Source of the DNA: Hyaloraphidium curvatum SAG 235-1
Lineage: Eukaryota > Fungi > Monoblepharomycota
Direction: 5' to 3'
Assembly (NCBI GenBank): GCA_025558095.1
Contig: JAIVFI010000030.1
Location: 62,001 to 126,000 of the forward strand
Length of the DNA stretch: 64,000 bases
Shown: positions 405 to 55,164 of the stretch, piece by piece
Layout of the letters: every line of letters begins with the position of its first letter
How positions within the stretch are numbered: position 1 is the first letter of the stretch
Notes under the pieces: generated by a model
The model's input: the letters and a program-made list of their open reading frames with translations, nothing else
Told to the model about the DNA's origin: nothing
Databases searched by the model: none
Translations under genes and position numbers: made by a program

Positions 405-798
405 TCAACTGTCCTCCGCGCACAGGCCCGAGACGCAGACGTCCGAGCCGCAGCAGTCCCCATCCCGGCTGCAGCCCTCGCCCGTGTCGGCACATGCCGG
501 GGCGTACCGCTTGTACAGCGCCCGCCGGTCCCTTGCGGGCGCGACGCAGGCAACCATGCCCGCGGGGGCGCCGGGGTGCGCGTACTCGCAGAACTGGTGG
601 GCGGCGCAATCAGCGCACGAACGGCGGAAGACGGCCGCGGTGGTGGATGGGGGACTGCGCGGAACAGGGGAGTCGTGAGCATCGGGCGGCGAAGGGAAGT
701 CGGCGAACCCACGCCGCGGCGGCCGAGGCGACTGAGGCAACGATTAGGAGGGCGACGATTAGGAGGGCGACGATTTTGACGGCGGTCGTGAACTTCAT
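405..798 (-). CDS. Small secreted Cys-rich precursor: signal peptide, conserved 4-Cys module, KR site, knottin-like peptide
   Basis: Exons 798-713 and 654-405; GT-AG intron 712-655. Protein: MKFTTAVKIVALLIVALLIVASVASAAAAPPSTTAAVFRRSCADCAAHQFCEYAHPGAPAGMVACVAPARDRRALYKRYAPACADTGEGCSRDGDCCGSDVCVSGLCAEDS*. Confidence 0.8.
741..775. repeat. 15-nt tandem duplication inside a signal peptide (IVALL x2)
   Basis: cgattaggagggcga occurs twice in tandem. Confidence 0.8.
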
Positions 799-1760
799 CG
801 TTGCTCACTCCTGTGTTCGTCGGTGCTTGGGGGGACGTCCCCTTTGACCCTTTATGGGGGATGATTTGATGGGGGATGAGGATCCCGAGTCGGGGGATGC
901 GGGCGGCATCCGGCTGTCCTCCCCGCCGTCATCGACCAGCGATGGGTTGGGCGGATCGACCGGAGACCCAGCGATTCGACTTATGAGCTTGCCTCGACGA
1001 CTAGGTGTCATTTTTGTACGACGGAAAACGCTGTCAAGCGATCCAAGGGGACCGAGGTATAGGCATCCCTTGCGGCGTGCGCTCCCTTTGCCACGAACAC
1101 CGATCCAGCCGATAGTTCATCACGGATCTCGTGCTCGGATACTAAAGTCAGGCGGACATTTTTTTGCATCCGTCGACGCTCCTGTTTCGGCGCTACGGCT
1201 GCCTCCGCTGCAGGTCGGCACTACATCGCCCTTCTGTGGTCCTCCACGCACTCGCCCGACTCGCACAGGCCGGATCCGCGGCACTGGGAGCATATCGATT
1301 GAAGGACTGTCTTAAGGAACTAACGGCACATCGAGTCGCGCTGTTGCGGCCGTAAAATGCGAGTTCGAAACGGACCGAAGGACAGTGAAAGGTTGCTGCG
1401 ATGCGCTCCCATAGCACCGCCCCGATTCGGGATCTCGTGCTCGCAGTAGCTCCCTTCGAAGCTCGAACATCTTTCATATCCATCGCGCGCCAGCATCTCC
1501 TCGGCCGAGGGGCAACAGCTGCTGTTTCGACGAACTCCTTCCCAGCGCGACGGCCAGCAGAAAAAGATGGCAAGAAACCCCAGGAAATGCAAAAGAAGAG
1601 ACCAAGCCGCAGTTCATCTCGTTGGAAACTTTTGCCCAGAACGCGATTCGTCCCGTCGTTCCAATCTTCGGTGGCCGGGCGGCTTCACTCCGGCTCGGAC
1701 CCGCTCGACCTCCCGACATTGAGCCCACCAGCACCCCCTCGGCAGCCCCGTCTCCCCACG

Positions 1761-2779
1761 ATGCTCCGCGCCACCTCTCTCTTCCGCGCCGTGCGCCAGG
1801 CCGCGCCCCGCCGCACCATGTCGGGCGCTCCGGTGCGCTTCCGCCCGCGACGCGTCGGAACCAGGAACTGACGCGAATTGCTCCCCCTGGACACCTCGGC
1901 CCCGATGTTGCCCCTCATGATACCGATGTGCTTCCGCCGATGTGGTTGCGACGCGTCGCGCGGGACCATAGCTCTACACGGCCGAGGCCACCGCCGTCGG
2001 AGTGGGCTGCCCTTGCCCCTGGAATCGGAAGCCCGCGTCGCTCACAAACCCCCTCCCCCCCTGCATCGCGCGTCCGATTCTCTCTCATAGGCCAGGTACG
2101 CTTTTGTTCCGACTGCCACCGTGGCCGCCCGGGCGCTGAACCTCCCCGCAGGAACGGCCACGTGAAGTCGAGCGACGGGATCCTGGACTTCGACCTGTCG
2201 GTGCCCAAGGGCATGGGCGGGCCGGGGGGTGCCAAGACTAACCCAGAGCAGCTGTTTGCCGCTGGGTAAGTCCCCCGTGGGGCCGTGGTGTGTCCAATTC
2301 TGACCTTCTGAGCCGTCGACGTGCTCCCCGCGGCCAAACAGCTACTCTGCCTGCTTCGGAGGCGCGCTTGGTGCCGCGCAGGGCATGCTGAAGCTGCCGA
2401 AGTGGGTCTCCTGCCTCCTTTTCGTGGTTTTGGGCACCGATGGACCGGCCGACCCTCACAGGCTGCCCGACAACATGAGCGTCAACGCAAAGGTCTCGAT
2501 CGGCAAGGGCGAGGGCGGCTTCGACCTCGCCGTGGACTTTGTCGTCACCGCTGTGGGCACTTCCGTCTCCAGCTCGCGGTGCGGCTGGATCGACTGATCA
2601 CTACCATTGCAGCCCGGCTACGACAAGGCGGACCTGCAGAAGATCATCGACAAGGCGCACACCGGTGGGCCCTCCATCTTTACCTCACGTTGCTTCGGAT
2701 CTGAACCGCGCTCTCGGCAGTCTGCCCGTACTCCCGGGCGACCAAGGGCAACATGCCCGTGACGACCGTCATCGGCTGA
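1761..2779 (+). CDS. ohr: Organic hydroperoxide resistance protein (Ohr/OsmC family) with probable mitochondrial presequence, multi-exon
   Basis: Spliced motifs LYTAEATAVGARNGH, TNPEQLFAAGYSACF and AHTVCPYSRATKGN, with both catalytic Cys present. N-terminus MLRATSLFRAVRQAAPRR is Arg-rich and lacks acidic residues. Confidence 0.9.
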
Positions 2780-3179
2780 GCATCCTGCTTTCCTCCACTT
2801 CTTTCTTGGCATCTATCGCCCGAATGTTCCGTGGTTGAATGCGCAGCCTTTTCCGCGCGCGGCTGGCATCGCAGGTCCGGGCGGTGTTTGCCTTTGGCGT
2901 GGGTGGCGTCCGGCCGGGCTGTGCGCCAATGCGACGGGCCCTGACGTCCGTCCGTCCAGCTTTCGGCCTCATACGGCACCGAAGAAGGAAGCAAAGTTGT
3001 CGGCTTCAACCTCCGTCCATTCGAGAAAGGAAACCTGGCTTCCATCGCGCGGGAGTTGCGGCGGCGGAACTGTTGTGGGTCCAGCGACTCAGCGGGATGC
3101 CGCAGCTCCGCCCCTTCGGGATCTGGCCGGCCAACACCGCCCGCGGCCCCCCCAGTTCACCCCAGCTCACACCGGACAC

Positions 3180-4816
3180 ATGCTCCTCGCCGCGCTCCTC
3201 GCCGTGCTGCTCCTGGCGAGCGGCGCGCGCGCGACGCCCACGCCCTCCGCCTGCGGGCCGGGCGTCTGCGGGGACGGCATCCTCTGCTGCGACGACTGGT
3301 TCCTCGGTGCGCCCTCCTCCTTCCCTTCCTCTCGCGATTCGGGCTGACTCGCTGGACTTCTGCACGCAGGCGCCAAGTGCTACCTCGCCGAGGTGATGGT
3401 CTGCACGCCCGACCTCGGGCGGGCCGCGGGCGACCTGTCGCTGTGCCCCGTCGGCACCTGGGCATGCGACAGAGCGTGCTATGACCCGTCGAAGTACCGA
3501 TGCGAGGGTGGGAAACTGGAGCTGGGGCCGGCTACGGCTACGGGAACTGGGACGGGGACGACAGAGACGGCGGCGCCCGAGACGACGAGCAGGGTGGTGC
3601 CGACCACCTCGCCGCGCCGCAAGACGACGAGCAAGGGGCCCAAGGCGACGACGACAAAGGCCCGCAAGACGGCCACGACGCGCAAGACGACCACCAAGCG
3701 CCCGACGACCAAGCGCCGGACGACCAAATCCCTCACCGCGGCCCGCAAGTCAACCTCCCGCCCGGTCCCCAAGGCCACGTCCAAGATTCCAGCCCCCCCG
3801 CCGACGACCACCAAATCCGGTCCCGCCCCCACGCAGACCGCCGACCTCCGCATCAAGAACTCGTGCACCTCCACCCTGTGGTTCGAAGCCCGCTGGATGG
3901 GCAAACCCCTACCCGGCCACGCGAGCACCATCACGCGCGCCCTCCCGGGCGAGTACGTTGACTACGTCATCCCCGCCGACGGCCTCGATTCGACGCGGTT
4001 CTGGGGCAAGTTCGGGTGCGACGACCGGGGGAGGAACTGCCTCGTCGGGGACAGTATGGGGTTCTACCCGGGGAACGAGTGCCCGCCCGGGGGGTGCAAC
4101 CCGCCGATCGACAGCCTCTTCGAGGCGACGTGGGGTTGCAAGCCGGGGACGGGGTGCCATGCCGCAAAGCCCACTACGTGGTTTGATACGACCCAGGTCC
4201 GTTTCCGCTGCTGTTGCGTGCGCGATAGCTGACTCTTTGCGCCCTCCAGGTCGACGGCTGGACGATCCCGTACCGCCTCCGCGCCTTCGGCGAGACCGAC
4301 CGCTGCGACTGCAAGGCCGGCGTCTGCGGCTTCTCCGGCGTCGATGCCACCCGCCTGACGCTGGACAAATGCCCCACCGCCGACGACCTCTCGTGGTCGG
4401 GCCGATGGGCGACAACGACCAACGGCTCCAACCTCTCGGCCGTGAACCTGCTCGCCGCCCGGAACGGCGTCGCGGTGGGCTGCATCTCGCCGTGCAAGAT
4501 CTTGACCTTCGCCCCGCCATGGGGCTTTGGCGAGAAGGAATCCGCGGGCGGCGCGGCCACGTACATGTGCTGTCCCACCCCCGATCCCAACCCCGCCACG
4601 TGCCGCCCCGAGACGGGCTGCCTCCTCTCGCCCGAGTGCAACGCGGGGCCGGTCAAGGACACGCAGTACGTGCGGACGGTCAACACGCTGGCGCCGGGGA
4701 TCTACGCCTTCAGCTACGACGACGAGGTCGGGCTGCACGCGTGCCCGGCAGGGACGGTGGTGTACGAGTTTGAGTTCTGCCCTGAGGGATCGGGGGAGTA
4801 CCCGATGCGGGTGTGA
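3180..4816 (+). CDS. Secreted protein: Cys-rich CBM52-like module, Thr/Lys-rich linker, thaumatin-like domain
   Basis: Signal peptide MLLAALLAVLLLASGARA; LCPVGTWACDRACYDPSKYRCEGGKL. Thaumatin motifs IKNSC..TLW, RFWGKFGC, FDTTQVDGWTIP, GCISPC, YAFSYDD. Introns near 3307-3369 and 4197-4249. Confidence 0.8.
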
Positions 4817-5530
4817 GGGCGTCGACGGCACCGCGGTGTTGCCCTTGGCGAGCACTCTCCTCACGTTGGCGGGCACGGCCGGCCGGGGGGCGGCACGGAG
4901 CAGCGGGCCCAAAGGCGACGCGCGGAAGAAGGCGGCGGCCTCTGCGAAGCCGCCGTCGAGCGACGCGGCCGCCAGGGACTCAGCAAGATCCGCCATGGCC
5001 GATTAAATTACGTCAGAGGCTCGGCGGCCGCGCTGCCGGTTCACGGTACGGTAGACGCGACGTTGTTGACTTGATGTCGAACCTGCCTAGGTCATCCACC
5101 CCGGCGCGGTGCTCCTCATCTAGCTCCATCCCGCCGATCAACCACGCGGATCCAGCTCGCAAAGTTCTTCGGAAAGCCGAGGAGAGGTTGCTTGTCGGGG
5201 GCGGACACCGCGCATCCGGATGTACTATGTAATCTTTGCTCCTCAACCGCGCTGAGCTTCTGGGCCTCAGCAGGCTCGCGGGAGGTTTCTTCCCCGGTCC
5301 CAACCCCGCGGGCACTCCTTTGATGCCGCCAAAGTGGACGGAAGGGGCATCCGGGACGGATCGATGATCTCGCGGAGCGAGTGAGGGACGCCGGGCCCTG
5401 CAGGGCCAGACGCGCGCAAGCCGCCCGGTCCAAAGTCCCGATTATATCGTACCCAAAGTAGCGTGGTCCTCATACAAAGTTGCTCCTCCTGCAATACCCG
5501 TCTACCCATCCATCCTTTTGTAGCCGGCGC

Positions 5531-6473
5531 CTAGTACATGGCGGCGGCGGCGGCAGCGGCGGCGGCACCGAGCACGGGCATCAGCGTGGCGCGGACCATG
5601 CTGCCAGCGCCGGGGCGGCTGGTGGTCGCGGTGGCGGTGACAGCGGCGAAGGGGATGGTGGGGGAGCCGTTGACGACGGCGGCGCACTTGGCGGTCAGGG
5701 CGACTGCGGGGGGGAGTTGTCAGCGCGGGGTAAAGGGCGGGGAAGGGCGAGACTTACAGACGGAGGGGCCGAGCGAAAGGGTGCCGCAGTTGCCGGCGGT
5801 GACGTTGAAGGTGCCGACGCCGGTGAAGGGGATCTGCATCGACAGGAAAACGCGTCACTTGAGGCGGCCAGCAGGCGACGGGGAGAAACCCACGGTGCAG
5901 GCGTCGTTACCGAAGAAGGCCATGGTGCCCGAAGCGGCGCCAGGGGCGCAGGCAGGGCGGCCGAAGGCGGGGATGCCGATGAAGCCGAGGGGCACGCACT
6001 GGTTGGCGATCACGGCGGCGGCGGTGAGGTAGGTGCCGGTGCAGGTGGCGCCGGACCACTGGGTGACGACAAAGTACTCGCCCTGCGGATGGGAGCGGGG
6101 CGTCAGCGCTGGGCCGGGCGCGGAAATGGGGCGCGGAAACCGACCGAGCCCTGGAGGGTGAAGGACGGGGGGGCGTTGGCGTTGCAGGTCTGGGTCACGT
6201 CGTAGTTGACTGTGGCGTTACTGGGAATGCAGGCGACGTTGCCCTGGCAGGTGGTCGGCAGGTTCGCCTGGACTGCTCGGCAGGAGAGGGAAAGGGGGGA
6301 CATGATCAGTGAGGAGCGGGTGGGGGCCCGGGCGTCAACGCACAGAGCTGCGGCGCGGTGGCGTTGACTTTGCAGCCCGAGCCGGGGATGAAGCCGTCGA
6401 TGATGGTCGCGGCGCGCGCGGGGGCGGCGGCCAGCGCGAGGGCGGCGAGGATGACGGCGGCGGCGGCGCGCAT
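5531..6473 (-). CDS. Secreted, probably GPI-anchored Cys-containing surface protein, multi-exon
   Basis: Signal peptide MRAAAAVILAALALAAAPARA; Thr-rich stretch and hydrophobic tail ...GAGSMVRATLMPVLGAAAAAAAAMY*; four short introns. Confidence 0.7.
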
Positions 6474-7213
6474 TTCGGCGGGGCGGCGGCGGGGCGGCGG
6501 GCGCTGAGACGGCGATCCGAAAGGCGCGGCGGGGTTGTGGCCGACGGCGGAGAGGCGCGGGTCGAGTGACTCGGCGGGGGAGCAGAAAAGGTGGGGGGGT
6601 GCGCGGGCCGGGCCACCCAGCCGGCAGGGGACTAAGCCCCGATTCCCGGCCCCCGCGCAATCAAGCCGGCCGACGGGCGGCGCGATCGCCGGATCGGGCG
6701 CGGTAACAGGATCGGCATCGCAGGACATTGCGCAAAGGCCCCTCGGGACGCATCCGGCAGGGCGGAAAGCACGAGTGACCCGCCCAGGCGCCGAATGATC
6801 CTTGCCCTTGCGTCGACGCCACCACCGGGGACTCGTACCGGCCAAAGGAAGCGCGGATGGGGTTGCAGTAAGCTTAAATAAACCGATCGGCGATTCAGAT
6901 ATGGGCCATCCGCGCGATTCGTCGCTCGGCGGGCCTGCGCGATGTGTCTCCCATCTTTGTCACCCAATCAAATCGAATCCCCCGCATGTGCTTTCCAATG
7001 TTCCAATAGATGGCGCACTTACAAATGACGCTCTACGCCGTTTCGTCGGACAAATAAACCGCGCGCAGGGTGCCTGCCTCGACAACGGCTCCGGGATCAG
7101 GCCCTGATCACTGGGAACCGTCAGCGAGTTAGGTGGCCTCTGCCTCGGAAACCGCCCCTCGTCCTTCGGCATTAGTAAACGCGTTGAAACGCGTTTTTGG
7201 CGTTGCCGATCGT

Positions 7214-8565
7214 ATGGGAGCCTGCTGTGCGGCCGCCGCTTGAGGCCCGCGTCCGCCGGCGGAACCGTTCTCCAAATGGACCGGGGACGCCTTCCTCGCC
7301 TCCCTCCGCCTCGCCTCGCCGGGGCTGGCCGCGTGGACAAGGGCGCAGATCGCCGTGGCGCCGTGGGTTGCCGGCCACGTGCGGCTGCGCTACACGGCCT
7401 TCTGGGTCCTGGGGTTGGCGCTGCTGCCGATCCAGTGGATCGCCAACAACGGCAGGTTCGGCACGGCGCAGCTGGCCGCGGGCACGGCGAGCTCGGCGGT
7501 GCTGGGGCTGGGCGGCATTGCCGCGGCGCTCTCGTCCAGGGGCTACGGTTCGCGGTACGAGGCGCCGGCGGGGTTCGGGCAGCACACGCTGGCCGTCGTC
7601 GCGCGGTGGGCGCAGCTGGTCCTCGGAGATCCGGCGGACAAGGGGCGGTCTTCGAAGCTGCTCGTGCACGACCCCAAGGACGGGCTCTGTCCCTGCCCGC
7701 TGCCGACGTGCGCGCGGGGCACGGTGGCGCTGGCCGGCCCCATCCGCTTCGCCGAATCCGCCCTTCGCTTGTCCAGTGCGTGGCTGTGGACGATCTTCTA
7801 CTCCTTGTGGATGCCGGCGGTGACATTCGCCGCGTTCACGTGGCGCACGCCGTGGGCCGCCACCCTTTGCGCGGTCTACATCGCTCTGAACCTCGAATTT
7901 CACTGTGCCAACGTCATCGTAATCCAGCCTCTGAGCTACGTTTCCCTGGAGCTCACCCTCAGGCTCCACAACCGGGCCATGTCGCTGGCCCTGGACTACC
8001 TCGTCCGGCGCTGCGGCCTGCCCGCGACCGAGGACCCGGCGCCGCCGTCGGGACCGCCGCCGGACGACGAGACGTACATCCTCCTCTACGAATCCATGAC
8101 CGCCGTATGGCAGCATCGCATCCGCTCGGCGGCGTTCAGCACCCGCCTCCTCGCCGTCGGCATCGTCGCCCTCGCGTTGACCGCCGTCGCCGGGATCGCG
8201 GCGGGCAACTGCCTCCCCGCCGCCTTCTTCTTCCTCCTGGCCTGCTACCTCCTCGTGCTCGCCTCGGACCTGGCCAACTTCTCAGAGAGCACCTCGCACG
8301 TCGCCGCCGTCCGCGCGCTGCTCCTCCGCGCGCGCACCCGCCTCCGCAGGCTGGCCCTCTCCCCGTCTCTCCCGCCCGCGCGGCTCGCCCTGGCGGAGAC
8401 TTGGACGCCTCGCCGGGGTGTTTGGCCAGGTACATGGGGTTCGCGGTGGACAGGGCGGTGGCGCGGAACGTGGCGTCGACGCTGTTTGCGATGGCGGTCG
8501 GGCTCTGGAGCGTTTTGAGGGGGAGCGGAGTCAGCGTGGGCCTGGAGATGGCCTGCGGGGGCTGA
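7214..8565 (+). pseudogene. Orphan multi-TM (GR-like/7TMIC-like) family, copy 2, disrupted
   Basis: Motifs NNGRFG, HDPKDGLCPC, AAGNCLP, DLAN and several hydrophobic segments. In-frame TGA at 7241 follows ATG 7214. A frameshift near 8395 moves the family C-terminus (ARYMGFAVDRAVARNVASTLFAMAVGLWSVLRGSGVSVGLEMACGG*) into another frame. Confidence 0.65.
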
Positions 8566-9954
8566 AGTGTCGGCGTTGCTGCCAAAAGATGGTTCTGCGG
8601 TCTTCCAGGTGTTGTGGTGGGGGCTTGTCGCGAAACACCGCATCTCCCGCCGGCTGCGGAGACCACCGCCCGGGCAAGAAAATGGCATGTCCGTCAGTGT
8701 AGCTGATTCACGGCTGCATGATGATCTGCAGTACTGTATTTTTTGTTCTGAGCGGGCCGGCGGAGCGAACTGGACGCTGGCCTGGCTGAGCAAGTTGAGA
8801 TCCGCGAGCCAGCAACACCGCCGCCCTTCCCCGCTGCCGCTGCAAGCCCGCGCCATGGCCGCCATCGCTGTTGCACGTGCGTCGCGGTGGCGTGAATTGC
8901 AGCCGCCGCTAACGGGCCCGCAGCGCGCTCCGGCGTCAGCATCGTCCTCCCGCGCATTGCGGAGGGAGCCGGCCTGCTCCCTCAAGCGGCGGCCCCCGCG
9001 CATGTTCCCAGCGGCGCCCTGAACGAAGGGTTCCATGCGCCCGCCGAAGCGCAGGAAGCCGCGAGGGTCATCTTCCCGGGAGCAGCGCCCGCCGTTTATC
9101 ATGTGCAGGCGACCGCTGATGTCGCTACAAACGTCGAGGTTGCTAGTGAAGGCGCCGGAAACGCGCTCGTCGACGTTCCCGCCGCGGCTCCCCGCGCTCC
9201 CCGGGCGGGCAGGAGGGTGAACCTCGGGGCCGGGCTCCGAGACCTCGCGGTAAGCCAGGGCCGGACAACGGAGAGGTCGAGCAGCTGAGTGCCCGCCCTC
9301 CCTACACCAGTACGAAGCCGTCATCACCGTGGCAGCGGAATCCAGCTGCAATGTTCTCACAAGGGCGCCGGCGACGGTCCTCGCTGCACCCGTCAGCGCC
9401 GGCTTCGGGGCGGTCGTAATGCACAGCTACGCCAGCCAGCTCAAGGATCTCACTGGCAACGATGTAGGGCTGCTTGCGACGCCGTCTTGCTTCTGAACGC
9501 TGATCGCGTCGCCCGGGCTTCCAGATCATGCGCTGGACCTGCACCGGGGCGGCGATCTTCGGATTCGCAGCCTTGGGGAGCACGGTGGTCTATTACATCT
9601 TTGAGAGGCCCACGTACCCTGGAAACCCGCCCCGGGGTAGGGCGGCGGGCATCGCCCTGCAGTGAAGTTGCACCCGAGTCGCCCAAGAGCAAGTTGCAGA
9701 GCGGACATGCCGCTAGCGAGCTAGCTGGTCATTGCAACAGCCCTGTCGGCTCTCTGCCATTTATTTGACAATAGTGGAGCGTTGCGAAGGAGGAATTCGA
9801 AGTGCTCCAGTCCATCATTGTTCGTCGTGGTGAGCAGGGACAGATAAAGCTTCGCAAGTAACACTCAAATGCACATTTCAATCGATCTCCTAACTCGGTC
9901 CACATCCAAATAGCGCCGTCCCGCCCTAAAGCCCCATTGCTCGGCAGCTCCAGA

Positions 9955-22784: not shown

Positions 22785-22856
22785 CCTCGCAGACCAAATC
22801 AAATGATCTAAGGATGCGATGGAAGGCGCAATCCGTCTCCCACTCACTCCACCGCA

Positions 22857-42685: not shown

Positions 42686-42986
42686 GACAGCGATCGGATA
42701 GAAGTCCTTTGGTCGTATCCGGCCCGGCCATGGTGGGGCGTGCCAGTGTAGAAAAGTCCTGCCCGCCGTAGTCGTGGATGCCGGCGGCGCCGATGGAGGG
42801 ACGGCCGTCGTGGATTGAGGGAACAAGCCTCTCAATCAGGAGCTCGGCCCAAGTAATCTTCTCTCGCAGCACGAAGAGGAACAGGGCAAAGGACGCGTCC
42901 GCCGCAGCCGCAGAATCAACGCTCTCCAAACAACCCGTTGAAGCCATCAGAATCAAAGATGTAAGGCAAGCTCGAAATCGTCGTGA

Positions 42987-44372: not shown

Positions 44373-44742
44373 ACGGCGACCGCGGGGGATGAATGCCGAT
44401 GCCGATCGCCTTTCAGCACTCATTTGGCTGGAAATTCCGCGTTTCGACGGATGTTGACCTGAAGTGTGGGCGAAGAAGCTTTCGGCGTGGTTTCTTTGCA
44501 GGCCACCGCTTGTCCGGTCGCCTCAATGCCGCACTGATCATCCCGCTGTTGCACAATGCAGCACTCGAAGCCGCCCTGTTGGACCGATATGGAACGGGGG
44601 TACGATGTCTCGCACGCGCAAATCTCATGTCTTGTGCACAATCCGCTCTCCACGACCTGGCCGCAAAGAAAAAGCCCTAGGCGTCCGCCGTTCTTGCATC
44701 GCCCGTTCCATTGAACCGCTCAACCAAGCATTGCAGAAAGGT

Positions 44743-45798
44743 TCACCGCACCTCTGCCTTGATCCCGTCGGCCCTCGCCGTGCCGAACCCGCCCGGATGC
44801 TGCAGCGGCACCGCGTCAGGCCTCAGCCAGTCCCTGTTGGCCGTCTCGCCTTCGGGCTTCGGGGGCTGCTGCGCCGCGGGGTGCGGGTAGCCGTAAGGCC
44901 CCGCCGGGGGTTGGTACGGGAAGCCCGCGGCAGGAGGGGGGTACGGCGAGCCGGCGGGGGGAGCGTAGGGCGAGCCCATGGGGGCGTACAGGCCTCCCGG
45001 CTGCGCGTATGGCGAGCCGGTTTGGGGTGGGGGAGGGTAGGGCGCCCCTGCCGCCATGTACGGCGACGCAGCGGGCGGGGTGTAGTACGGCTGCTGCGGC
45101 GGCGGGGGGTACGGAGTCCCCGGGGGCGGATACGGCGAGGCGTACATGTTTGCCGGGGGAGGGAACGGGGAGGGCGGGTAGCCCGCTTGCGGGGGGTAGG
45201 GCGCTTGTTGGGGGTAGGGGTACGGGTAGGGATAGGGCGCCCAAGCGGGGCCGGGGGGCGGTTGCTGGGGGAAGTACGGCGGGTAGGGATTGGAGGGGGC
45301 GGGAGCCGGGGAGTAGGATGCAATCGGTGGCGGCGGGGCGGTTGTGGCAGGGGGGGCCGCTTGGGGAGGGGCGGCCGGTGTCTCCTGCGGCCCGGGGTCG
45401 GCCTTGAGGTGCGGCAGGGCAAAGCCTTGCAACGTCAGGTCCGCAGATGTGCCTGCTGCAAATTCCTGGCGTGCGGCCTCTGCCAACGTGCGGTGCCTCG
45501 CGAGCCGCGGCATCGACCCCGGCCCCCGATGTGGAGGAGGCGAACCTTGCCCCCGCTCCACCGCCTGCCCCTCCGCACCGGGCGCCGGCCGGGGAGCAGG
45601 CCACGAATTTCTTGCTTCCTCCGCCGCCGCCGCCTCGGCCGCAGCCCTCTCCCTTTTCTTCCTTCGACATCTTCTAGCAGCTTCCCGATTTCTCTCCCTT
45701 CTCCGCTCCAAACGCGCGGCCCGCTGCTCCTCCGTCAGGCGCTCTTCGACGCGGGGTCTTCCCCGCCGACGGGGCGCCTCGCTGCCGTCGCTGTCCAT
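44743..45798 (-). CDS. bZIP-type basic-region protein with AT-hook and Pro/Tyr-rich tail
   Basis: RRRGRPR; RRRERNREAARRCRRKK; YP-rich low-complexity region; exon structure uncertain. Confidence 0.7.
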   Translation of the reverse strand: MDSDGSEAPRRRGRPRVEERLTEEQRAARLERRRERNREAARRCRRKKRERAAAEAAAAEEARNSWPAPRPAPGAEGQAVERGQGSPPPHRGPGSMPRLARHRTLAEAARQEFAAGTSADLTLQGFALPHLKADPGPQETPAAPPQAAPPATTAPPPPIASYSPAPAPSNPYPPYFPQQPPPGPAWAPYPYPYPYPQQAPYPPQAGYPPSPFPPPANMYASPYPPPGTPYPPPPQQPYYTPPAASPYMAAGAPYPPPPQTGSPYAQPGGLYAPMGSPYAPPAGSPYPPPAAGFPYQPPAGPYGYPHPAAQQPPKPEGETANRDWLRPDAVPLQHPGGFGTARADGIKAEVR

Positions 45799-46570
45799 CG
45801 GGGGCAGAGGTCGCGAGGGATGACTGGTCCGGGACGTCGGTGGCTCGGCGTGTGACCCGTCACCGAGAAAGTTGGGGCCCTGATCTGCGGCGGCCGCACC
45901 CCCCGACAACGGATCGGGGCTTCCGAACACCCTCTTGGGACGCCGACGGGCTCCATCTGCCGTTCTGCCTTGATTCCGCTGCGGCTGGCTTGGGACCAGG
46001 CACCTGAAGAGGTGCTGACGCGCATCACTACCGCCCTCCCTGCGTCAGCGAGTCACCACCGGCCATGAGTCCGATGAAAACAAAAGCATCCGCCTCAACT
46101 CCATTCGGGATTTCGTTTGCCTTGCTCGGCAATATTCGTCCGGAGCATATTCGCTGAGCCGGTTCGCCGGGAACCGGGCAGGACCTCTCCGACGCCACCC
46201 TTGCCCCCGCGCCGCGGACAGCACCCATCCCCCTCTCCATGTCTGTGCGGCTTCTCCGTCTACCTACTGCCGTATACCGTGCTTCTCCGGCCTCCTCGAG
46301 CCCCCGTGCGGGACGTGGCCGCCGTCCCTTGCGATCCCACCGGCGGCCACCCGACGCCGTCGAGCATCTCCCTCCATCCATCCAACGCGAACTTCCGCCT
46401 GTGCGTCCGGGCCGTTTTCCTCTCCCGCACCCGCCTTGATGCCCGAAAGCCCGGCCGGCCAGCTGCGGCCGCACCCGTTCTCCCGCTGCCCTTCCGCCCT
46501 TGCAACCCCCGTCCCACACCCCTCTGCAGTTCCTCCCCGTACCACTACCTCTACCCTCCGCTCCGCGACG

Positions 46571-47173
46571 ATGCCGCCGCGGACCTCGCTCCACTCCCGC
46601 CCGCACGTCCGCGCGCCGACCGCCGCCTACCTCCGCACCTGGCTCCGCGCGAACCACGCGACTTCCTCCGGGGCATGGATAGTCTATCCGCTGAAGGGCA
46701 CGGCGGAGGACGCGCCCGCGTGGTCGGACATCGTCGACGAGCTGCTGTCCTTCGGGTGGATCGACTCGACGGCCGGCAAAGCGGAGGGGGGATGGAAGAA
46801 GCTCTGGGCGTGTCCCCGGCGCGCCGGCTCTCCCTGGAGCAAAATCAACCGCGCCAAAATCGCGAAGCTCGAAGAGGACGGCAAGATGGAGGAGCCCGGG
46901 CTGGAGGCGGTGCGCCGCGCTCGGGAGGACGGGAGCTGGGACCGCCTTGCCTCGGCGTGGGACGGGACCGTGCCGGGCGAGCTGGAGAGGGCGTTCGCGC
47001 GGTATCCGGGGAGCAGGGAACAATTCGAAGGGTTCCCGCCAGGGGCAAAGAGGATTCTGCTGGAGAGGATAGCCGAAGCAAAGAGGGACGAGACGAAGGA
47101 GCGGAGGGCGGACGCGATCGCCGAGGCGGCGGCGAGGGGGGAGCGGTGGGGCTTTGGGGGCGGGAAGGGGTGA
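46571..47173 (+). CDS. YdeI/OmdA (bacteriocin-protection) family protein, intronless
   Basis: LRTWLRANH, LLSFGWIDS, PRRAGSPWSKINR, GLEAVRRAREDGSW, AKRDETKERR. Confidence 0.85.
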   Translation: MPPRTSLHSRPHVRAPTAAYLRTWLRANHATSSGAWIVYPLKGTAEDAPAWSDIVDELLSFGWIDSTAGKAEGGWKKLWACPRRAGSPWSKINRAKIAKLEEDGKMEEPGLEAVRRAREDGSWDRLASAWDGTVPGELERAFARYPGSREQFEGFPPGAKRILLERIAEAKRDETKERRADAIAEAAARGERWGFGGGKG

Positions 47174-47569
47174 TGCGCGGATGCGGAAGGAGCTGGAGAC
47201 GTTGGTGGAGCTCTTGCTTTTGCTCGGTTGCGGACGATGTTTCAGTTGGTTCGAGAGTTGGTCGTTGGATGTCGCCGAACGCGGCAGAACCGGGCCCGCC
47301 GGCGCCCGCCCCCACGCCCATCCGTTCCCTGCCTTTCCTTCCGTCCAAAGTGGAGTTCTTTTCGGCTTCCGGCCCGTCCTTGGGTCCTGTGACGCATCCG
47401 ATTGATCGAGGATTGCGCGATCCCGCCACCCGCTCGCCGCTGCGGCAAACTCTACCACCAATCCGGGCGTCTCCCGGCGGTGCCACCTTTCCCCTCTCCC
47501 GCCCGCGGTCGGTGCCACCCGTCTTTCTTCTCCCACCGCGTTCGCCGCCGGCCGCCGCCGCACGCCGCC

Positions 47570-48955
47570 ATGGGCTCCGCCTCGGAAACCCCGGACTTCA
47601 CCTCCATCCCCGTCCTCGACTACTCCCTCCTCCCCGCCGACCGCGCCGCCTTCCTATCGCAACTCAGGCACGCCCTGACCAACGTCGGATTTATGCAGCT
47701 CCGGAACACGCCCGTCCCGTGGTCGCTCGTGCAGAAGCTCGTCGGCTACGCGGGGCCCCTGTTCGCCCTCCCCGACGCCGAGAAGGAGAAGCTCGAGATG
47801 AGCACCAACCCGCACTTCCTCGGGTACAACCGGCTCGGGTACGAGATCACCAAGGGGCTGATGGACAGGAGGGAGCAGTGGGACCTCGCGCCGGACGTGG
47901 CGTGCCGCTGGAAGGGGGAGGCGGATCCGATCCACAGGAGGACGCACGGGCCGGCCCCGGGAGTTTGGCCGGTGGAGACGGAGAAGAACGGGCTGGTTGG
48001 GTTCAAGGAGACGACGCTGGACGTGGGTTCCTTCGGACGCGCGGGATGGGTTCGCGGAGCTCAACCCTTGTTCCCTGGCTTGGGACCCACAGTACATCAG
48101 GAGGATCACCGATTTCTCCTTCGAGTTCCTGCGGCTCATTGAGGAGGCCGTCGGCATCGTCCCCGGCTCTCTGGAGAAGTACTTTGCCGACGACCAGGTG
48201 CGGGAGGGCGGGAGCATCAAGATCGTCCGGTACGCCCCATATCCCCCTCCATTTTCGCCTTTTCCTCATCATCGTGCCATGGCAGGTACCCCGCGGCCGC
48301 CGAGGGCGAGACCACGCAGGGTGTCGGCCCGCACAAGGACCCGTGGATCACCTTCCTCGTCCAGGGCGACGACCTCCCCGGGCTGCAGGTCCAGAACCAC
48401 GCCGGGGACTGGGTCGACTGCCCGCCCATGGAGGGCTGCTTCGTCACGAATTTCGGCACGCTGCTGGAGACCGCCACGCACGGGAGGATCATCGCGACCA
48501 CGCACCGCGTAGAGTCGCCGCCCGCCTCGGCCGGGCGCGCGAGGATCTCGATGCCTTTCTTCCAGCGGATCGCGTTGGACGCCGTCGTCGCGCCGCTCCC
48601 CGCGTCGTGCTTCGTCGACTCGGGCGCGGCGGCCGCGCAGGACGACGCGCCGAAGGCCATTTCGGACGCGGCGAAGGAGCAGTACCCCATCAGCGGGGAC
48701 TCGCCGATCTGGGGGTCCATGTACCTTTGGTGGGTAGCTCTGCCGGTCCAGCTGGGAGGAAGGCGGACGGCTGATTGGTCGTTTGCGTTCAGGAACCGGC
48801 TCCGCAGCCACCCCGACGTCGGGTACCGGTGGTACCCGGACCTCATGCCCAAAGTGATGGAGGGCTTCGTGTCGGGGCACCCCTTCGAGGTCGAACGGCG
48901 GAGGAAGGCGGCCGAGGCCGAGGCGGCGGCGCAGGTCGGCGTCGGCGCGGCCTAA
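47570..48955 (+). CDS. 2-oxoglutarate/Fe(II) oxygenase (DIOX_N + 2OG-FeII_Oxy, IPNS-like), multi-exon
   Basis: IPVLDYS, VGFMQLRN, PHFLGY, REQWD, GVGPHKD, GLQVQN, ATTHRV, RISMPFF. Confidence 0.9.
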
Positions 48956-49016
48956 TCCCTCGGGGACGGAGGACGGGTCGGCCAAAAAGTGTCGCGGCAG
49001 CGTGGTTGCCAATACA

Positions 49017-49695
49017 TTAGCCCTTGTTCACGTTCTGCACGACCCATTCCAGCCCTTCCTTCAGGCCCTCCCCCGTGAGCCCGCACGAGGGCAGGATCGT
49101 CCACGGCCGGTCCTTGATGGCCGTCAGCGAAAGCGCGGTGGATATCTGGAACGCGAGCGTGAGCGGGCGGGGAAGGCGGGCGCGGCGGCACGTGCCTCGG
49201 CGGCCATCATCGCCCCTTTGACGTCCTGCTTGTTGGCGAAAACGAGGAGCGCCGACTTTTTCAGCAGCTGTCCGGGGACGGGCGCGGAGCATCAGCGCTG
49301 CCGTCCGAACGGGACGCCCGGCGGGAAGCATGAGCTCGGATGCCGCCGCGTACCTCGTGGGACATTATCCGCGCCAGCTCCTCCCTCACTATCGGCATCC
49401 TATCCCGGTCCGTCGAGTCCACGACCAGGATGACCGACCTCGCCCCGGAATAGTACGCCGACCACGACGCCCTCAGGCTCGCCTGCCCTCCCAAATCCCA
49501 CATGATGATCTTCAGGTTCCGATACGAAAGTTCCTCGACGTTGGCGCCGAGCGTCGGGGTGGTCGCGACCGTCGCGCCCATGGAGAGGCGGTACAGGATC
49601 GTCGACTTGCCCGAGTTGTCCAGGCCGAGGATGAGGATCTTCACCTCCTCGGCGGCCCATATCAGGGCGAAGAGTTTGGAAAAGAGGATGCCCAT
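49017..49695 (-). CDS. ARL5: ADP-ribosylation factor-like GTPase, ARL5-like
   Basis: MG start, GLDNSGKST, PTLGANVEE, WDLGGQASLRASW..YY, VVDSTDRDR, FANKQDVK, LTAIKD, GLTGEGL; two introns. Confidence 0.8.
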
Positions 49696-50297
49696 GGCGT
49701 CCGGGTGGGCCGCGGGAACGGCGCGCGCGAGGAGCGTTGTTTGGGTTCGGCCCTCTCTCCGAGCGGGCAGCGACCTCGATGGGCCACCAAGCTCAACAAA
49801 AAGGCGATTCCTTAGCGCTCCAAAACGTCAACGCGGGCCCTTTGCCTGCTCTCCGTGGTCCGGGAACGGTTTCGGCGGGGCTACACAAGCGGCCGCGTTC
49901 CACGGGTCCTGCTCCACCTCCGCCGCTCTGGCGGGCAAGACTCGGTCGGTTCTGTGCTCTCAGGCTTCTAAAGGTTTCATTCGGCCCCCCTGAGGGTCGG
50001 AGAGAGGTTTCCGGTGTGAGCAAGTGTGGTGTTGCGTGGGAGGGTCCGCGGAAGGCAGCGTCACCTCATCTTCGTCGGGCGTATATCCATCGACCGATCT
50101 ATTTCATTGGGGCATGCAACAACACGATCAACCTCTCCAGATCGTCGGCCGGCCCGATTTCACGAAGAGGCCCTCAATCGTCGTCGCCTGCTTGGGGACG
50201 AAGCGCCTGACGAACTCGCAACGAAGTATAGCCCAGCGCGTCCGGGTTGGTGCCCGATCCAGGCGACCGTTTTGGCTTGCTTTTCAGCATCCTTCCA

Positions 50298-51311
50298 TCA
50301 CAGCTTCAGGTCGGCCGAGTCCCCGATGCGGTAGAATCGCAGCGCATTGGTGCGCAGGATCTTCTTCCGATCCTCCTTGCCCACACCCATCCGCCTCAGC
50401 ACGATCATGTTGGCCCTCACGATCTCGCCGAGCCGCGCCTGCCCGCCGTCGACGGGGAAGTTGGACGCCCACATGCACCTGTCGACCCCGAACGCCCCGA
50501 CCGCGTGGGCGATCATCCCGCCGAACACGCCGTCGGCGATCTCCCAGCGCGTGACGGAGGCCGCGCCGCCGGGGCGGAGGTGGTAGTCGAGCCCCAGCGA
50601 GGCCATGAGCCCGCTGAGCTTCGCATGCACGTTCTTGTTCGCGGCAAGGAGGTCGATGGCATCGGCCCAGGCGCGGAATTTGGAGCCGTCGGGGTCCTTG
50701 GCGATGTCCAGCGGCCCGCCGAAGTGATCGAGCACCATCGGAATCCCGGGGAACCTAGCTGCGAACTTGGCCGCCTCGGAGATCTGGTGCCCGTAGCACC
50801 ACAGCTCGAACGAGGCGCCGTGCTTCTCCAGGACGGGCATGGCACGCAGCAGCCGCTCGTTGAGGAACGGGTTGGCGTCCCTGTGCCCCGACGAGTGCGC
50901 GCCGGACGGATCGTTGGTGACGGTGTAGCGCAGGCCCCGAAAAGCAGGGCTGGCGGCCTTGTGCGCGGCCAGGCACGCGTCCACGTCCTCGGCCGAGCGC
51001 ATCAGATTGACGTGGCCGACGATGGCGCGGCACACGCGGCCGGCGGTGGGCACCGTCGCGTTTTCCGCCACCCATTTCGTCTCGTTGGCCTGGCCGACCG
51101 GTCCGCCCTCGAGCCAGCCGCACTCGAGGTAGACGGAGCACTCGAGGAGCAGGCCGGCGTCTTCGTAGTCCTTGAGGTAGTGGCTCACGACGTAGTCGCG
51201 CTCGCCACCGGGCACGGCAAGCTTCGGCCGGCGGGCGTCGTCGACGAGCCAGAGATGGTGGTGCGCGTCGACGATGCGGCCGCCGTCATCGAGCGCGTCG
51301 AGGGCTTCCAT
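50298..51311 (-). CDS. Amidohydrolase-2 family protein, intronless paralog of 21196-22784
   Basis: IVDAHHHLW, ETKWV, FRGLR, FELWCYGHQI, DHFGGP, NVHAKLSGL, DRCMWASNFPVD, FYRIG; ends LKL*. Confidence 0.9.
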   Translation of the reverse strand: MEALDALDDGGRIVDAHHHLWLVDDARRPKLAVPGGERDYVVSHYLKDYEDAGLLLECSVYLECGWLEGGPVGQANETKWVAENATVPTAGRVCRAIVGHVNLMRSAEDVDACLAAHKAASPAFRGLRYTVTNDPSGAHSSGHRDANPFLNERLLRAMPVLEKHGASFELWCYGHQISEAAKFAARFPGIPMVLDHFGGPLDIAKDPDGSKFRAWADAIDLLAANKNVHAKLSGLMASLGLDYHLRPGGAASVTRWEIADGVFGGMIAHAVGAFGVDRCMWASNFPVDGGQARLGEIVRANMIVLRRMGVGKEDRKKILRTNALRFYRIGDSADLKL

Positions 51312-51435
51312 TTCACTTGGAAAGATTGGCGTGGGATTGCAAGTGTCGAACGAAGAAGTGGGAGACACTGCGACCAACGCGCGCCGCCCGGCGCGCGCGC
51401 GTCGGAGGAATATGCGATCGACACATACAACGGCA

Positions 51436-52920
51436 ATGTCCACCGAGGTCCACGAGAAACCCGAGCCGTCACCCCGTCCGCGGCTTTTCGCGCCGCGTGA
51501 TTGGCGCCTGCTGTTCCCCAGCGGGCGTGCGGGCAACGGCTTGGCGTCGTCGTCCCTGCTGCCTCTGGACGAGGTCGGCGACGGCGACGAAGGCGATGCC
51601 GCCGCAGGATCAGATACGGCCACGCCTCCGACAATGGACCAACTCGCCGCGGCTCTCAAGCCCGCGCCGCCTCTATCGACGCTCGTGTGTCTTGACATTC
51701 TTCGTGCCTCGGCATCAAACGGCTTCGTGTACGCCAGCATGATGATCGTCTTTTCCGGCCTCAAGCTCGCGCTGGCCGCCTCTTCGGTGTTCGCTTTCAA
51801 TGACGGGCGCTTTGGCATGCCGCAAATGATTGCCGGAATCGTCGCCTACGCCTCCAACCAACCTACATCATCATTTCGCACCTGCTCGGGAGGGGCTGGT
51901 TCGGTGACGTAACGTCGACGACGACCGCAGGTCACGCCTTGCTTCCCTTGTTGAGCTACTTGGACGAGACCTGGCCCGGGAACCGCCCGACTTCGGGCAT
52001 TGAGAACGAGATCGCAGCGCAGCACATCCTCGAACACGACCCGGCAGACTCGTTGTGCCCGTGCTTCTCGTGCGCCGGTCGACTAGTGCAGCGCGCCGGA
52101 GCTGCGGCGCTTTTGACTAGTCTCTTTTGGTGCCTGGAAGAAGTTGTATGGCACCCGTTGGCTACGAACTGGCCCGCACTGGTGACTTTTGCCGACCGTA
52201 CCTGGCCTTCCGCATGGGCTTTGCTCAATATGGCCGTCATCTTGAGCGGGCTTGCTTAATCAATTTTCGTTTGCATCGAATCCATCGGGTGGCGGCAAAA
52301 TCCGTTCGTACTCTACATTCAGAGCAGGATATACCGGCGGGCCGCCAAGCTCGCGCTCGCGGACTTCTACATCCGCGCCCGCGCCGCCGCACGGGACGGA
52401 CAGCCGATCCCACCGGCAGCATCGGAACCCTACTTTGTCCTGCACCATCGCTTCGCGGAAGTCTGGCGCGGCCGCATGGTCGCGTCCGCCGCCATCCGCG
52501 GGGCCGTGGTCGCGCTGCTCCCCGCGGTCATCGTCGGCCTCATCATAACCTCGCCGCGGGCTCCTGCGTCACCTTACCGGGCCTTTTTCTGTTGCTTCTC
52601 AACTTTGCCGTCATTTCCCAGGATCTCGTGCACGCCGCCATCTCCAACGCGCAGATAGACTCGGTGCTGGACCTGTACGCGGAACTGCGCGAGCGCCTGC
52701 GGTCATTGCCGCCCAGCGAGGGCGTGCGCGCGCATGCAGACCTGCTTTCCTCCTTCCTTGAGGCGTCGCGGCTCCGCGCGACGGTGTTCGGGCTCCCCGC
52801 ATCGTTCTCCCTCCTGCGCGCTGCGGCTGCGTCTCTTCTGACCGTGGCCTTCGCGCTCTACGACCTGTCCGCGGATCCGGGGTGTTTCTCACGTTGCAAG
52901 TTGTCTGCCCCTCTCGTTGA
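51436..52920 (+). pseudogene. Orphan multi-TM (GR-like/7TMIC-like) family, copy 3, multiply frameshifted
   Basis: Family motifs are scattered over different frames: NDGRFG, HDPADSLCPC, AAGSCV, DLVHAAISNAQI, HADLLSSFL...ATVFGL, RGSGVFLTLQVVCPSR*. Confidence 0.7.
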
Positions 52921-53360
52921 GGAGAGCAAGGCCGAGAGGGCCCGATTACCCTATTTTGCATGCCATGGTTGGGACGGTGCAGGGGAACGCCTTCTCCACC
53001 GTCTCCGGACAGGATGCCGTCTGATCTATTTCTTCGTCGCTTCGAACATGAAGGGGGTGGCGAAAGTTCATGCGGTTGGCGGAGGGGTTGGGGGTTTAGC
53101 CGACCGTTGCCCGTTCGCTCCACCCACGGCCCCGCTTATCGTACCGAAACTAGCGCCGAATGCATGGTGCGCAACGCACAACGCATCGAACATGATTTCT
53201 GTTGGACGCCGCATTAGTCATTCGACGGCGCGTCCCCCGCACCTGGTGGGAGTAGGAGGGTCCGCGGACTAACCCCGGCTCAACTAAAACGGAGCCGGGT
53301 CATCCCAGCCTCGAGAACCATTCCATCGAGGACCCGCCCGCCACCGGACATTCTCGCGCC

Positions 53361-54440
53361 ATGCCCGGCTCCGCTGTGGCCTGCCCGCCACGCGCCCCGC
53401 CGAACACGCCCGCCGACGACGACGCGGCGATCTTTGCGCACGGCCGCGCGCGCCTCCGGAGCTACCGCGCGGTGGGCCGCGAGCTCGGCCGCGGCGCCGA
53501 GGCGCACGTGCGCGTCGTGCTGCAGCCGGCGACGGGCGCCCACCTGGCGCTCAAGGTGCTGCCGAAGCGCGGGGCGCGTGCGGGACACGCGTTTGCGCTC
53601 GAGGCTCGCAGGCATTGGGACCGCACGGCGGCGGCGTGCGCGAGCTGCGATCGGCTGCCGCAGTTCGTCGAAGGCTTCGAGACGCTCGCGGCGTTCTATG
53701 CCGTGATGGAAATCCTGCCCGACTCGCTCGGCGCCGTGCTCGAACGCCGCGGTGGTTTGCCAGACAGGGAGGCCGCCGGCGCCGCCGCTGCATTATTGGA
53801 TGGGCTGGCGCACCTGCACAGCCACGGCATCATCCACCGCGACGTCAAACCGGCAAACATCCTGCTGCGCGCTCACGGCCGCGTCGACTCGCTGTGTCTC
53901 GCCGACCTGGCGTCGGCCTTCTGCTCGTCGCACAAGGGCGCCGCTCCCATCGTCCCCGCCGGGGCCCCCGTCGCCGGCACTCCAATGTACCTCCCACCCG
54001 AGGCCGTCCGCGGCCGCGCAGTCGGAACCCCTGCAGACGTCTGGGCCGCCGGATGTGTGCTGCACGAGATGATCTTCGGCCGCACGCCGTTCGAGGACGC
54101 AGGCTCCTGGGGCGCCCTGTTCGCCCTCATCGCCCGCGCAAAGATTGACATCCCCGACCACCCCGCGGCCTCCCTGATGCGAAGGCTGCTGGACCCGGAT
54201 CCATCCGCACGCATCGTCGCCGGCGAGGCGCTGCAGGACCCCTGGGTTGCGTCAGAGAGGCAGCCCACCCCGCGGCTGGCGGTCATCGGACTGAGGGACG
54301 CGCTGCGTTGGAGCGCGCTTGTGCAGCCGTGCACCGTGGCGGGGTTCCGCGGGTCGGGGGCGCAGGTGGTGTTCGAGTCGGGGCAGCTGAGGGTGGTGGG
54401 GATGGAGTCGTCGCCGAACGAGCTGCTCCCGATATACTAG
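53361..54440 (+). CDS. Ser/Thr protein kinase (CAMK-like), intronless
   Basis: LGRGAEAHV, LALK, HRDVKPANILL, DLA in place of DFG, GTPMYLPPE, DVWAAG, DPDPSARI. Confidence 0.85.
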   Translation: MPGSAVACPPRAPPNTPADDDAAIFAHGRARLRSYRAVGRELGRGAEAHVRVVLQPATGAHLALKVLPKRGARAGHAFALEARRHWDRTAAACASCDRLPQFVEGFETLAAFYAVMEILPDSLGAVLERRGGLPDREAAGAAAALLDGLAHLHSHGIIHRDVKPANILLRAHGRVDSLCLADLASAFCSSHKGAAPIVPAGAPVAGTPMYLPPEAVRGRAVGTPADVWAAGCVLHEMIFGRTPFEDAGSWGALFALIARAKIDIPDHPAASLMRRLLDPDPSARIVAGEALQDPWVASERQPTPRLAVIGLRDALRWSALVQPCTVAGFRGSGAQVVFESGQLRVVGMESSPNELLPIY

Positions 54441-54555
54441 ACGGGTGCAAGCCCCGGATACGGTTGTCTTGTGGTCTGTCAATTTTGGAGGGGCAAAGGC
54501 CTAGGAGCCACTAAGCGTGTTGACCGGCACTGACCGACGCCGAAAGACGAAGACA

Positions 54556-55164
54556 TCAATCAAGGCAAATCTCGCCGACGTTCGTCGGGCACGAGTTTCC
54601 GCCCTTGACGTAGTAAGCGCTAGTGCCGTCTTCGATTGCCGATCCCGAAATGCTTGTGATAGCATAGCAGTTCCCCGCGGTCATGAACGCCGCCAAGCAG
54701 TCGCCGGCCGCGTTGCAGAGGGCCTTGCAGGCCGCGACATCCGTCAGGCCCGCCTGCAGCAGGGGGGACGTGTCGCTGCACCCGAAGAGACTGCCGCAGC
54801 TGGTGTAGCCGTCGCCGTAGCGGCGATAGAGGTTTCGACTGCCGGAGTAGCTGACGCAGGCGACCTTGCCGTCGGGAGCGCCGGGGTAGCCGAACTCGCT
54901 GCGAAGTCCCCCGTCAGGGGCCGATCCCGCGCGGCGCGGGTGAATCTTCCCACCAAAACGAGCTTTCGCCGCACTCCCCACACGCGCGCTTGAAGATGAC
55001 GTGGCTCGCGGTGCCGACGGGGCTGCGGGGCAGGCGGGGGGGTGGCGAGCGGGCAGGCGGGGTCAGCCTTGGCGCCGGCGTCGGGCCGCGGAGGCATACC
55101 CCGCGAGCGCCTGGGCGGAGAGGGCGCAGAGCAGGACGGCTACCGCGAGGGCGCGGGTGACCAT
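54556..55164 (-). CDS. Small secreted Cys-rich precursor: signal peptide, conserved 4-Cys module, RR site, PAN/apple-like domain
   Basis: Exons 55164-55100, 55022-54954 and 54898-54556; GT-AG introns with CTGAC branch points. Protein: MVTRALAVAVLLCALSAQALAGPVGTASHVIFKRACGECGESSFCEFGYPGAPDGKVACVSYSGSRNLYRRYGDGYTSC...ACKALCNAAGDCLAAFMTAGNCY...ICLD*. Confidence 0.8.

Follow-up and report, generated by a model that had tools for sequence, protein, structure and literature searches.

Two genes on the minus strand of Hyaloraphidium curvatum SAG 235-1, a free-living early-diverging fungus, encode proteins that begin alike and end differently, which raises the question of what a shared leader on unrelated secreted proteins is for. 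The genes, here called A and B, lie 54 kb apart in a 64,000-nucleotide stretch of contig JAIVFI010000030.1 (assembly GCA_025558095.1, positions 62,001 to 126,000; hereafter, the window), and they are the only members of their family within it. Both encode, in order, a signal peptide, a four-cysteine module, a linker ending in L-Y-[RK]-R-Y, and one of many unrelated domains, which we refer to as cargos. The initial annotation of this DNA interpreted the pair as a modular secreted-precursor family, with the module as pro-domain, sorting tag or co-released peptide, and our analysis supports that interpretation. To it we add a kexin docking model, a region-by-region account of conservation, a rule for intron placement, a check of cargo folds and a bias of the copies towards contig ends. 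Sequence comparison and structure modeling lead us to favor, with a probability of roughly 60%, a reading in which the module is a shared folded pro-domain that a kexin-type convertase removes after Arg-Arg.

Alignment of the two proteins by BLASTP (E 8e-18, 43% identity, residues 13-91 of A against 6-86 of B) extends from the signal peptide, which in each gene lies directly upstream of the module, to about 14 residues beyond LY[KR]RY, and no further. Both carry the cysteine pattern C-x2-C-x5-C-x13-C with FCE[FY]xxPGxPxGxVAC, a resemblance far beyond chance given that the block finds 139 to 167 six-frame matches in its own genome. A common signal peptide, a phase-2 intron and a conserved block had been described for the pair from the outset, and the blocks quoted at that time are found exactly in the exon translations (Table 1). 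The splice forms proposed then equal the public gene models exon by exon, with the exception that the second intron of gene B, which interrupts the module within the codon of its third cysteine (F-C|E), had been overlooked. The public models are P0018 for gene A (KAI9010048.1 / KAI8999873.1, 111 aa) and P0010 for gene B (KAI9010078.1, 158 aa), each named "hypothetical protein [Hyaloraphidium curvatum]", and our own exon-by-exon reading of the two genes agrees with them. The remark that the open-reading-frame track hides the family is only partly right, as the public annotation models both genes correctly.

Table 1. Features of genes A and B (positions in the window) and candidate convertase loci elsewhere in the genome
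Feature	Position	Strand	Remark
Gene A, exon 1: start codon and signal peptide (MKFTTAVKIVALLIVALLIVASVASAAA and 2 bases of the next codon)	713..798	-	N-terminus identical to P0018
Gene A, intron, 58 nt, GTGGGT...GCGCAG	655..712	-	phase 2, after residue 28
Gene A, exon 2: PPSTTAAVFRRSCADCAAHQFCEYAHPGAPAGMVACVAPARDRRALYKRY, then the 33-residue six-cysteine peptide	405..654	-
Gene A, module, linker and junction (AVFRRSC...ALYKRY), in exon 2	504..635	-	profile match E 4.6e-20
Gene A, junction L-Y-K-R (P4-P1)	507..518	-	predicted cut between 507 and 506; P1' Tyr 504..506
Gene A, cargo, 33 residues, C-x6-C-x5-CC-x4-C-x5-C, knottin-like	408..506	-	stop codon 405..407
Gene A, basic pair before Cys1	~624-616
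Gene B, exon 1: start codon and signal peptide (MVTRALAVAVLLCALSAQALA and 2 bases)	55100..55164	-
Gene B, intron 1, 77 nt, GTATGC...CCGCAG	55023..55099	-	phase 2
Gene B, exon 2: first half of module (PVGTASHVIFKRACGECGESSF and TG of the Cys3 codon)	54954..55022	-	between two phase-2 introns
Gene B, intron 2, 55 nt, GTGGGA...TTCGCAG	54899..54953	-	phase 2, within the Cys3 codon
Gene B, exon 3	54556..54898	-
Gene B, second half of module, linker and junction (C|EFGYPGAPDGKVACVSYSGSRNLYRRY)	54817..54898	-	profile match E 1.1e-10
Gene B, junction L-Y-R-R	54820..54831	-	P1' Tyr 54817..54819
Gene B, cargo, PAN/apple-like, 87 residues	54559..54819	-	stop codon 54556..54558
Gene B, basic pair before Cys1	54994-54986
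S8 + P-domain locus L061	C21:~105.4-107.4 kb
S8 + P-domain locus L062	C33:~285-287 kb
S8 + P-domain locus L063	C17:~595.4-596.8 kb

The two genes belong to a large family. Exon 2 of gene A, used as a query, gave 139 six-frame matches in the 32-Mb genome from which it comes, and a 48-position profile built from 15 intron-free modules gave at least 167 with 150 of 278 candidates scored; we place the number of family copies in H. curvatum at about 140-170. Searched with the profile, a library of 1.84 billion proteins, itself selected from about 15 billion, yielded 89 representatives (50% identity clusters) at E <= 1e-3. By NCBI names or by exact matches to H. curvatum's own loci, 64 of the 90 family proteins could be traced to a source, and all 64, the weakest matches included, come from this species. 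A scan of metagenome contigs with a degenerate DNA pattern, which catches the closest variants only, found no match, and the ESM Atlas yielded no usable match to the module. The module region of a 230-aa member matched only itself and a neighboring paralogue in a word index too coarse for the family. The family thus seems, as far as can be seen from sequence databases, to be restricted to H. curvatum.

Nor does the module correspond to a named domain: Pfam gives no match over it in any of the 90 proteins, no Pfam family is common to all of them, the module profile has no sequence relative in the PDB, and we found no description of the family in any paper. Dickkopf_N was considered and rejected, as it matches gene A only, at 22 bits against a cut-off of 25, over a span that includes both module and knottin; the match looks driven by cysteine content. 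The initial annotation had anticipated a lineage-specific family of more than two copies lacking a named domain, and these searches bear it out on each count. Across the 90 proteins the junction reads LYRRY in 62 and LYKRY in 8, and by a crude test 80 have a hydrophobic stretch, preceded by Met, immediately before the module.

To describe the anatomy of the leader we used the 78 proteins that match the full pattern. The cysteine spacing C-x2-C-x5-C-x13-C is fixed in 70-71 of them, and the linker that follows the module is variable, with a length of 7-14 residues. At its end stands a sharply bounded pentapeptide, with L conserved at 96%, Y at 89%, Arg at the R/K position at 87%, R at 89% and Y at 94%, flanked by residues conserved at 38% or less. 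Mean pairwise identities within the class of proteins with PAN-type cargos follow the same boundaries: 30% for the signal peptide, 60% for the module, 19% for the linker, 92% for LYRRY and 22% for the cargo. The number of cysteines in the cargo is even in 66 of the 78 proteins, which fits two disulfides internal to the module.

Structure prediction with AlphaFold2, using family alignments, renders the module as a three-stranded mini-domain with a predicted local distance difference test (pLDDT) score of 88-95, the linker and junction at a pLDDT of 49-61, and the cargo as a separate confident domain. The module is accordingly modeled as a compact domain of ~33 residues with two disulfides and a three-stranded beta-sheet. 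Searches with this fold returned noise-level matches only, to beta-defensin-like and other structures (Foldseek E > 4, VIA Z 2.1-3.1, Atlas template-modeling (TM) score 0.53). Many members have a second basic pair, in the form F-R-R-S-C or F-K-R-x-C, immediately before the first cysteine, and the Arg at position -2 is 87% conserved; this pair is part of the first beta-strand and is not the docking site in the kexin model described below.

What follows the junction differs greatly among members. The cargos of the 90 proteins fall into at least 37 groups unlinked by BLAST, which, together with the absence of any alignment between A and B past the junction region, agrees with the original view of the cargos as unrelated. 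The biggest groups comprise 15 PAN-like cargos, gene B included, and 12 with an unnamed cysteine-rich domain. Matches above Pfam cut-offs were obtained to an NHL/teneurin propeller, a leishmanolysin-type M8 protease (Peptidase_M8) and the ALK/LTK glycine-rich domain (ALK_LTK_GRD), and matches by E-value to EGF (best 7.9e-12), STIG1-like (1.3e-9) and HYDIN-type Ig (3e-4) domains. Judged by sequence, the cargos behave as independent units.

The identity of the gene B cargo emerges from its predicted fold. Exon 3 has no Pfam PAN match, and two or three relatives match PAN_4 or PAN_1 below the curated cut-off, at E 3e-4 to 6e-4. AlphaFold2 models residues 75-150 at a pLDDT of ~90; the PAN fold is a helix packed on a beta-sheet and held by disulfides. 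The leading Foldseek matches of this model are nearly all PAN/apple domains (probability up to 1.00, E-values 0.03-1), and it superposes on PAN modules with a root-mean-square deviation of 1.8-3.4 Å over ~80 residues. As modeled, the gene B cargo is a PAN/apple domain by fold, as had been proposed. For gene A, the suggested knottin likeness stands in the six-cysteine C-C-CC-C-C framework, and the profile matches behind it, weak and all to knottins, stay below threshold: Toxin_23 at 18.5 bits (cut-off 22.2) and conotoxin GXIA at E 0.006. This cargo has no paralogue in the genome except an exact duplicate on contig C48.

Some apparent cargos and leaders reflect the public models. VIT1, thioredoxin and short-chain dehydrogenase, each considered as a cargo, are most likely neighboring genes merged by annotation; in at least two of the merged models, P0036 and P0053, the module is immediately preceded by a further signal peptide. 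In the set P0036, P0053, P0049, P0081, P0082 and P0086, some models appear to merge an upstream neighbor (a VIT1 transporter, a thioredoxin or a 780-residue coiled protein), and others retain the intron of the Cys3 codon, so that the N-terminal half of the module is concealed. A few models stop just after the module (P0050, 73 aa; P0052, 83 aa; P0076, 72 aa).

The junction has the form expected of a kexin site. The extended Kex2 consensus, L-x-[KR]-R, has Leu or another aliphatic residue at P4, any residue at P3, Lys or Arg at P2 and Arg at P1 (PMC8528282). L-Y-[RK]-R, which occupies residues 75-78 of 111 in gene A and 68-71 of 158 in gene B, matches in both genes the motif of Kex2-processed pro-domain (K2PP) proteins, namely KR, RR or LxxR in the N-terminal half after a signal peptide (PMC8528282). 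Counting from the end of the module onward, 62 of 81 proteins have no other [KR]R. A close Kex2 orthologue is encoded in the same genome: P0091 has both S8 and P domains and matches the yeast Kex2 structure 2id4 at 473 bits (E 1.3e-140), higher than it matches furin. Three genome loci, that of P0091 among them, combine an S8 subtilase with a proprotein-convertase P-domain (Table 1), among 11 P-domain matches in total; many fungi have a single Kex2 homologue (PMC8528282).

We modeled the complex of P0091 (residues 20-505) with the gene B protein P0010 (residues 22-158). The model scored 0.84, with individual runs at 0.46, 0.84 and 0.86, and controls gave 0.00 as the best of 3; among solved complexes 51 of 78 attain the calibration mark for such models, and among mismatched pairs 2 of 108 do. 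Between runs, at least 52% of the contacts are shared, with a partner pLDDT of at least 51. In the best run, R71 (P1) contacts Thr289/Ser290 of the GTS motif, which puts the P1 Arg at the catalytic serine, R70 (P2) contacts Asp76 and His115, and L68 (P4) contacts residues 146-147 and 174-176, the catalytic residues of P0091 having been assigned by sequence alignment. The FCEF strand of the module (residues 44-48) also touches the protease, and the other dibasic pair of P0010, K33-R34 in the first strand, is not docked. The modeled complex supports cleavage after Arg-Arg.

Put together, the signal peptide would be removed and the protein would fold in the endoplasmic reticulum (ER), after which a kexin-type proprotein convertase in the late Golgi would cut after Arg-Arg. 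The products would be a mature cargo beginning with Tyr and a free module peptide of ~45 residues, which could have a function of its own. The role that we prefer for the module is that of a common handle for folding, ER exit, sorting, or presenting the site to the convertase. We infer both the cut at the dibasic site and the purpose of the module.

Several points weigh against this proposal. Tyr is near-invariant at P3 and P1', and kexin specificity does not explain it. Dibasic pairs in the cargos are not depleted relative to shuffled sequences (34 observed, 18 expected), part of the excess stemming from a few doubtful gene models. The complex test is uncalibrated for peptide, disordered or flexible substrates; structures of Kex2 and furin with bound inhibitors exist, and the docked pose may be one that the model recalls from them. 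The splice forms and expression of genes A and B rest on public gene models, and the species tracing covers 64 of the 90 family proteins. Finally, known K2PP pro-domains are short, rich in disorder-promoting residues, typically without secondary structure and not described as shared (PMC8528282), so that a folded module conserved at 50-60% suggests a job beyond removal.

The near-invariant Tyr residues, the folded and conserved module and the contact of its FCEF strand with the modeled protease fit a plain pro-peptide poorly and leave room for other accounts of the leader. The module might never be removed, serving as a permanent N-terminal domain that tethers the proteins to the wall or matrix, links them together or binds a ligand that they share, with LYRRY as a binding or structural motif. 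Module identity of 50-60% across paralogues whose cargos cannot be aligned exceeds the constraint usual for a disposable pro-piece, kexin does not require the Tyr residues at P3 (89%) and P1' (94%), and many of the cargos (PAN, EGF, NHL, Ig-like) are of adhesion type. We nevertheless regard permanent retention as unlikely, in that LYRRY is an island in a low-confidence linker of variable length, an exposed L-x-R-R in a Golgi that contains kexin would be expected to be cut, and the complex model puts LYRRY in the active site in substrate register. One could also reverse the roles, such that ~150 genes release a similar 45-residue disulfide peptide, for signaling or defense, and the C-terminal parts are passengers. 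No cargo is as strongly conserved as the module, models P0050, P0052 and P0076 end right after it, and it has a faint beta-defensin-type likeness (Z 2.1-3.1, TM 0.53); but those structural matches do not rise above noise, truncated annotation may account for the short models, and the cargos are well-folded, recognizable domains, an enzyme among them. We give this possibility little credence.

A further account makes the module an address tag, recognized by a dedicated sorting receptor that delivers all members to one compartment or wall layer, where LYRR|Y would be cut on arrival. The pro-parts of cnidarian nematocyst proteins and the pro-peptides of apicomplexan secretory-organelle proteins offer a comparison, and we know of no special secretory organelle in H. 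curvatum. One conserved folded handle on ~150 different cargos, motif Tyr residues that kexin leaves unexplained, and three S8 + P-domain convertase loci, against the single Kex2 of many fungi (PMC8528282), are what such a tag might look like; the sequence data do not separate it from a plain pro-domain, and we hold it to be very improbable. The more general version, in which module and LYRRY form a lineage-specific address-and-release system whose handle is read by a receptor or by a convertase exosite and which sends ~150 cargos along one route to be cut on arrival, is speculative and in our estimate quite unlikely. If true, it would be a fungal counterpart of the sorting signals in cnidarian and apicomplexan organelle pro-parts, and a natural portable secretion-and-processing tag.

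Among characterized systems, the closest in kind to a cleaved, folded pro-domain are the Kex2-processed pro-domain proteins, with which the family has the site and the layout in common and not the disordered, unshared pro-domain. K2PP effectors such as SnTox3, ToxA and SIX1/4/6 likewise consist of a signal peptide, an N-terminal pro-piece, an L-x-x-R/[KR]R site and a mature domain, and the protease proposed for them is the Golgi kexin, with a consensus of Leu at P4, Lys/Arg at P2 and Arg at P1 (PMC8528282). Their pro-domains are defined as disordered and lacking secondary structure, whereas the module is predicted to be folded (pLDDT 88-95), and here one four-cysteine domain, at ~50-60% identity, precedes unrelated cargos on ~150 proteins. 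K2PP effectors also belong to plant-pathogenic fungi, unlike the free-living H. curvatum, in which cleavage is predicted.

Conotoxin and spider-toxin precursors, classified by signal sequence (PMC3559828), have a conserved leader, a variable payload and release at basic residues. Within their superfamilies the mature peptides are homologous and short, in contrast to the different domain families of 30 to >380 residues found here, and the H. curvatum leader includes a folded disulfide domain. The Kex2-processed repeat proteins (Ustilago Rep1, Rhizophagus SP7-like; PMC8528282, PMC5293756) have conserved [KR]R sites thought to be cut by Kex2, yet these are tandem repeats cut into many peptides, rather than a single site between two different domains. 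Oomycete RxLR/CRN effectors and the fungal Y/F/WxC families (PMC5293756) resemble this family as large, expanded, lineage-specific secreted families with a conserved post-signal element and divergent C-termini. What is conserved in them is a short linear motif or the LFLAK domain, linked to host delivery, whereas the H. curvatum module is a disulfide-bonded domain, as modeled, followed by a dibasic site. To our knowledge, H. curvatum has no host.

The family, known from one species, would be a clear fungal case of one conserved folded leader on ~150 different secreted proteins in a free-living, early-diverging lineage. If the leader is a cleaved pro-domain, it would widen the notion of a Kex2 pro-domain, so far applied to short disordered pieces, to take in a structured domain that many proteins share; the module, LYRR|Y and the kexin P0091 would then be a defined system for studying convertase substrate choice, and the leader might find use as a portable tag for secretion and processing.

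How the cargos came to differ, by exchange at the junction as the initial annotation suggested or otherwise, can be approached through the introns. In about 130 of the 167 genomic matches the first aligned position is profile position 19, which is the Glu following Cys3, and from this we conclude that a phase-2 intron in the Cys3 codon is a family rule; gene A is among a minority of ~17 copies without it. Public models on the loci show two recurrent phase-2 introns, one a few residues past the signal peptide and one in the Cys3 codon. Exon shuffling at LY[KR]RY, a candidate mechanism, is rejected for genes A and B: the junction does not coincide with an intron in either, which excludes intron-mediated shuffling there for these two. 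A module tree requires 26 changes of cargo class, compared with 32-35 in shuffles and a minimum of 9, a weak grouping, and modules are 53% identical where the cargos are related and 50% where they are not. With 45 residues, the tree lacks the power to distinguish frequent swaps from poor resolution, and the rate or mechanism of cargo swapping is therefore not inferable from it.

Family copies are biased towards contig or chromosome ends. On contigs of at least 400 kb, 59 of 145 copies (41%) lie within 50 kb of a contig end, where 14% are expected, and 115 of the 145 lie within 150 kb, where 42% are expected; the central 40% of the contig holds 7. Another copy is found within 10 kb of 54 of 150 copies, and tandem clusters include one of six copies within the opening 18 kb of C28 and another of five within the opening 33 kb of C16. 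Binomial P values overstate the end bias because the copies are not mutually independent, yet the trend is clear. With this bias and its many cargo types, the family is an instructive example of the assembly of new secreted proteins.

Two further observations concern the assembly. Gene A (window 408-653) has a 100% identical second copy at C48:17957-18202 (L002), on a contig of 30.6 kb, and other family copies are duplicated between C44 and C47 and between C17 and C47; the small contigs with duplicate copies might represent either alternative haplotypes or segmental duplications of recent date. At their right ends, C2 (L077) and C30 (L078) finish in tandem TTAGG repeats (GGTTAGGTTAGG...), from which the telomere unit of H. 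curvatum appears to be TTAGG, not TTAGGG.

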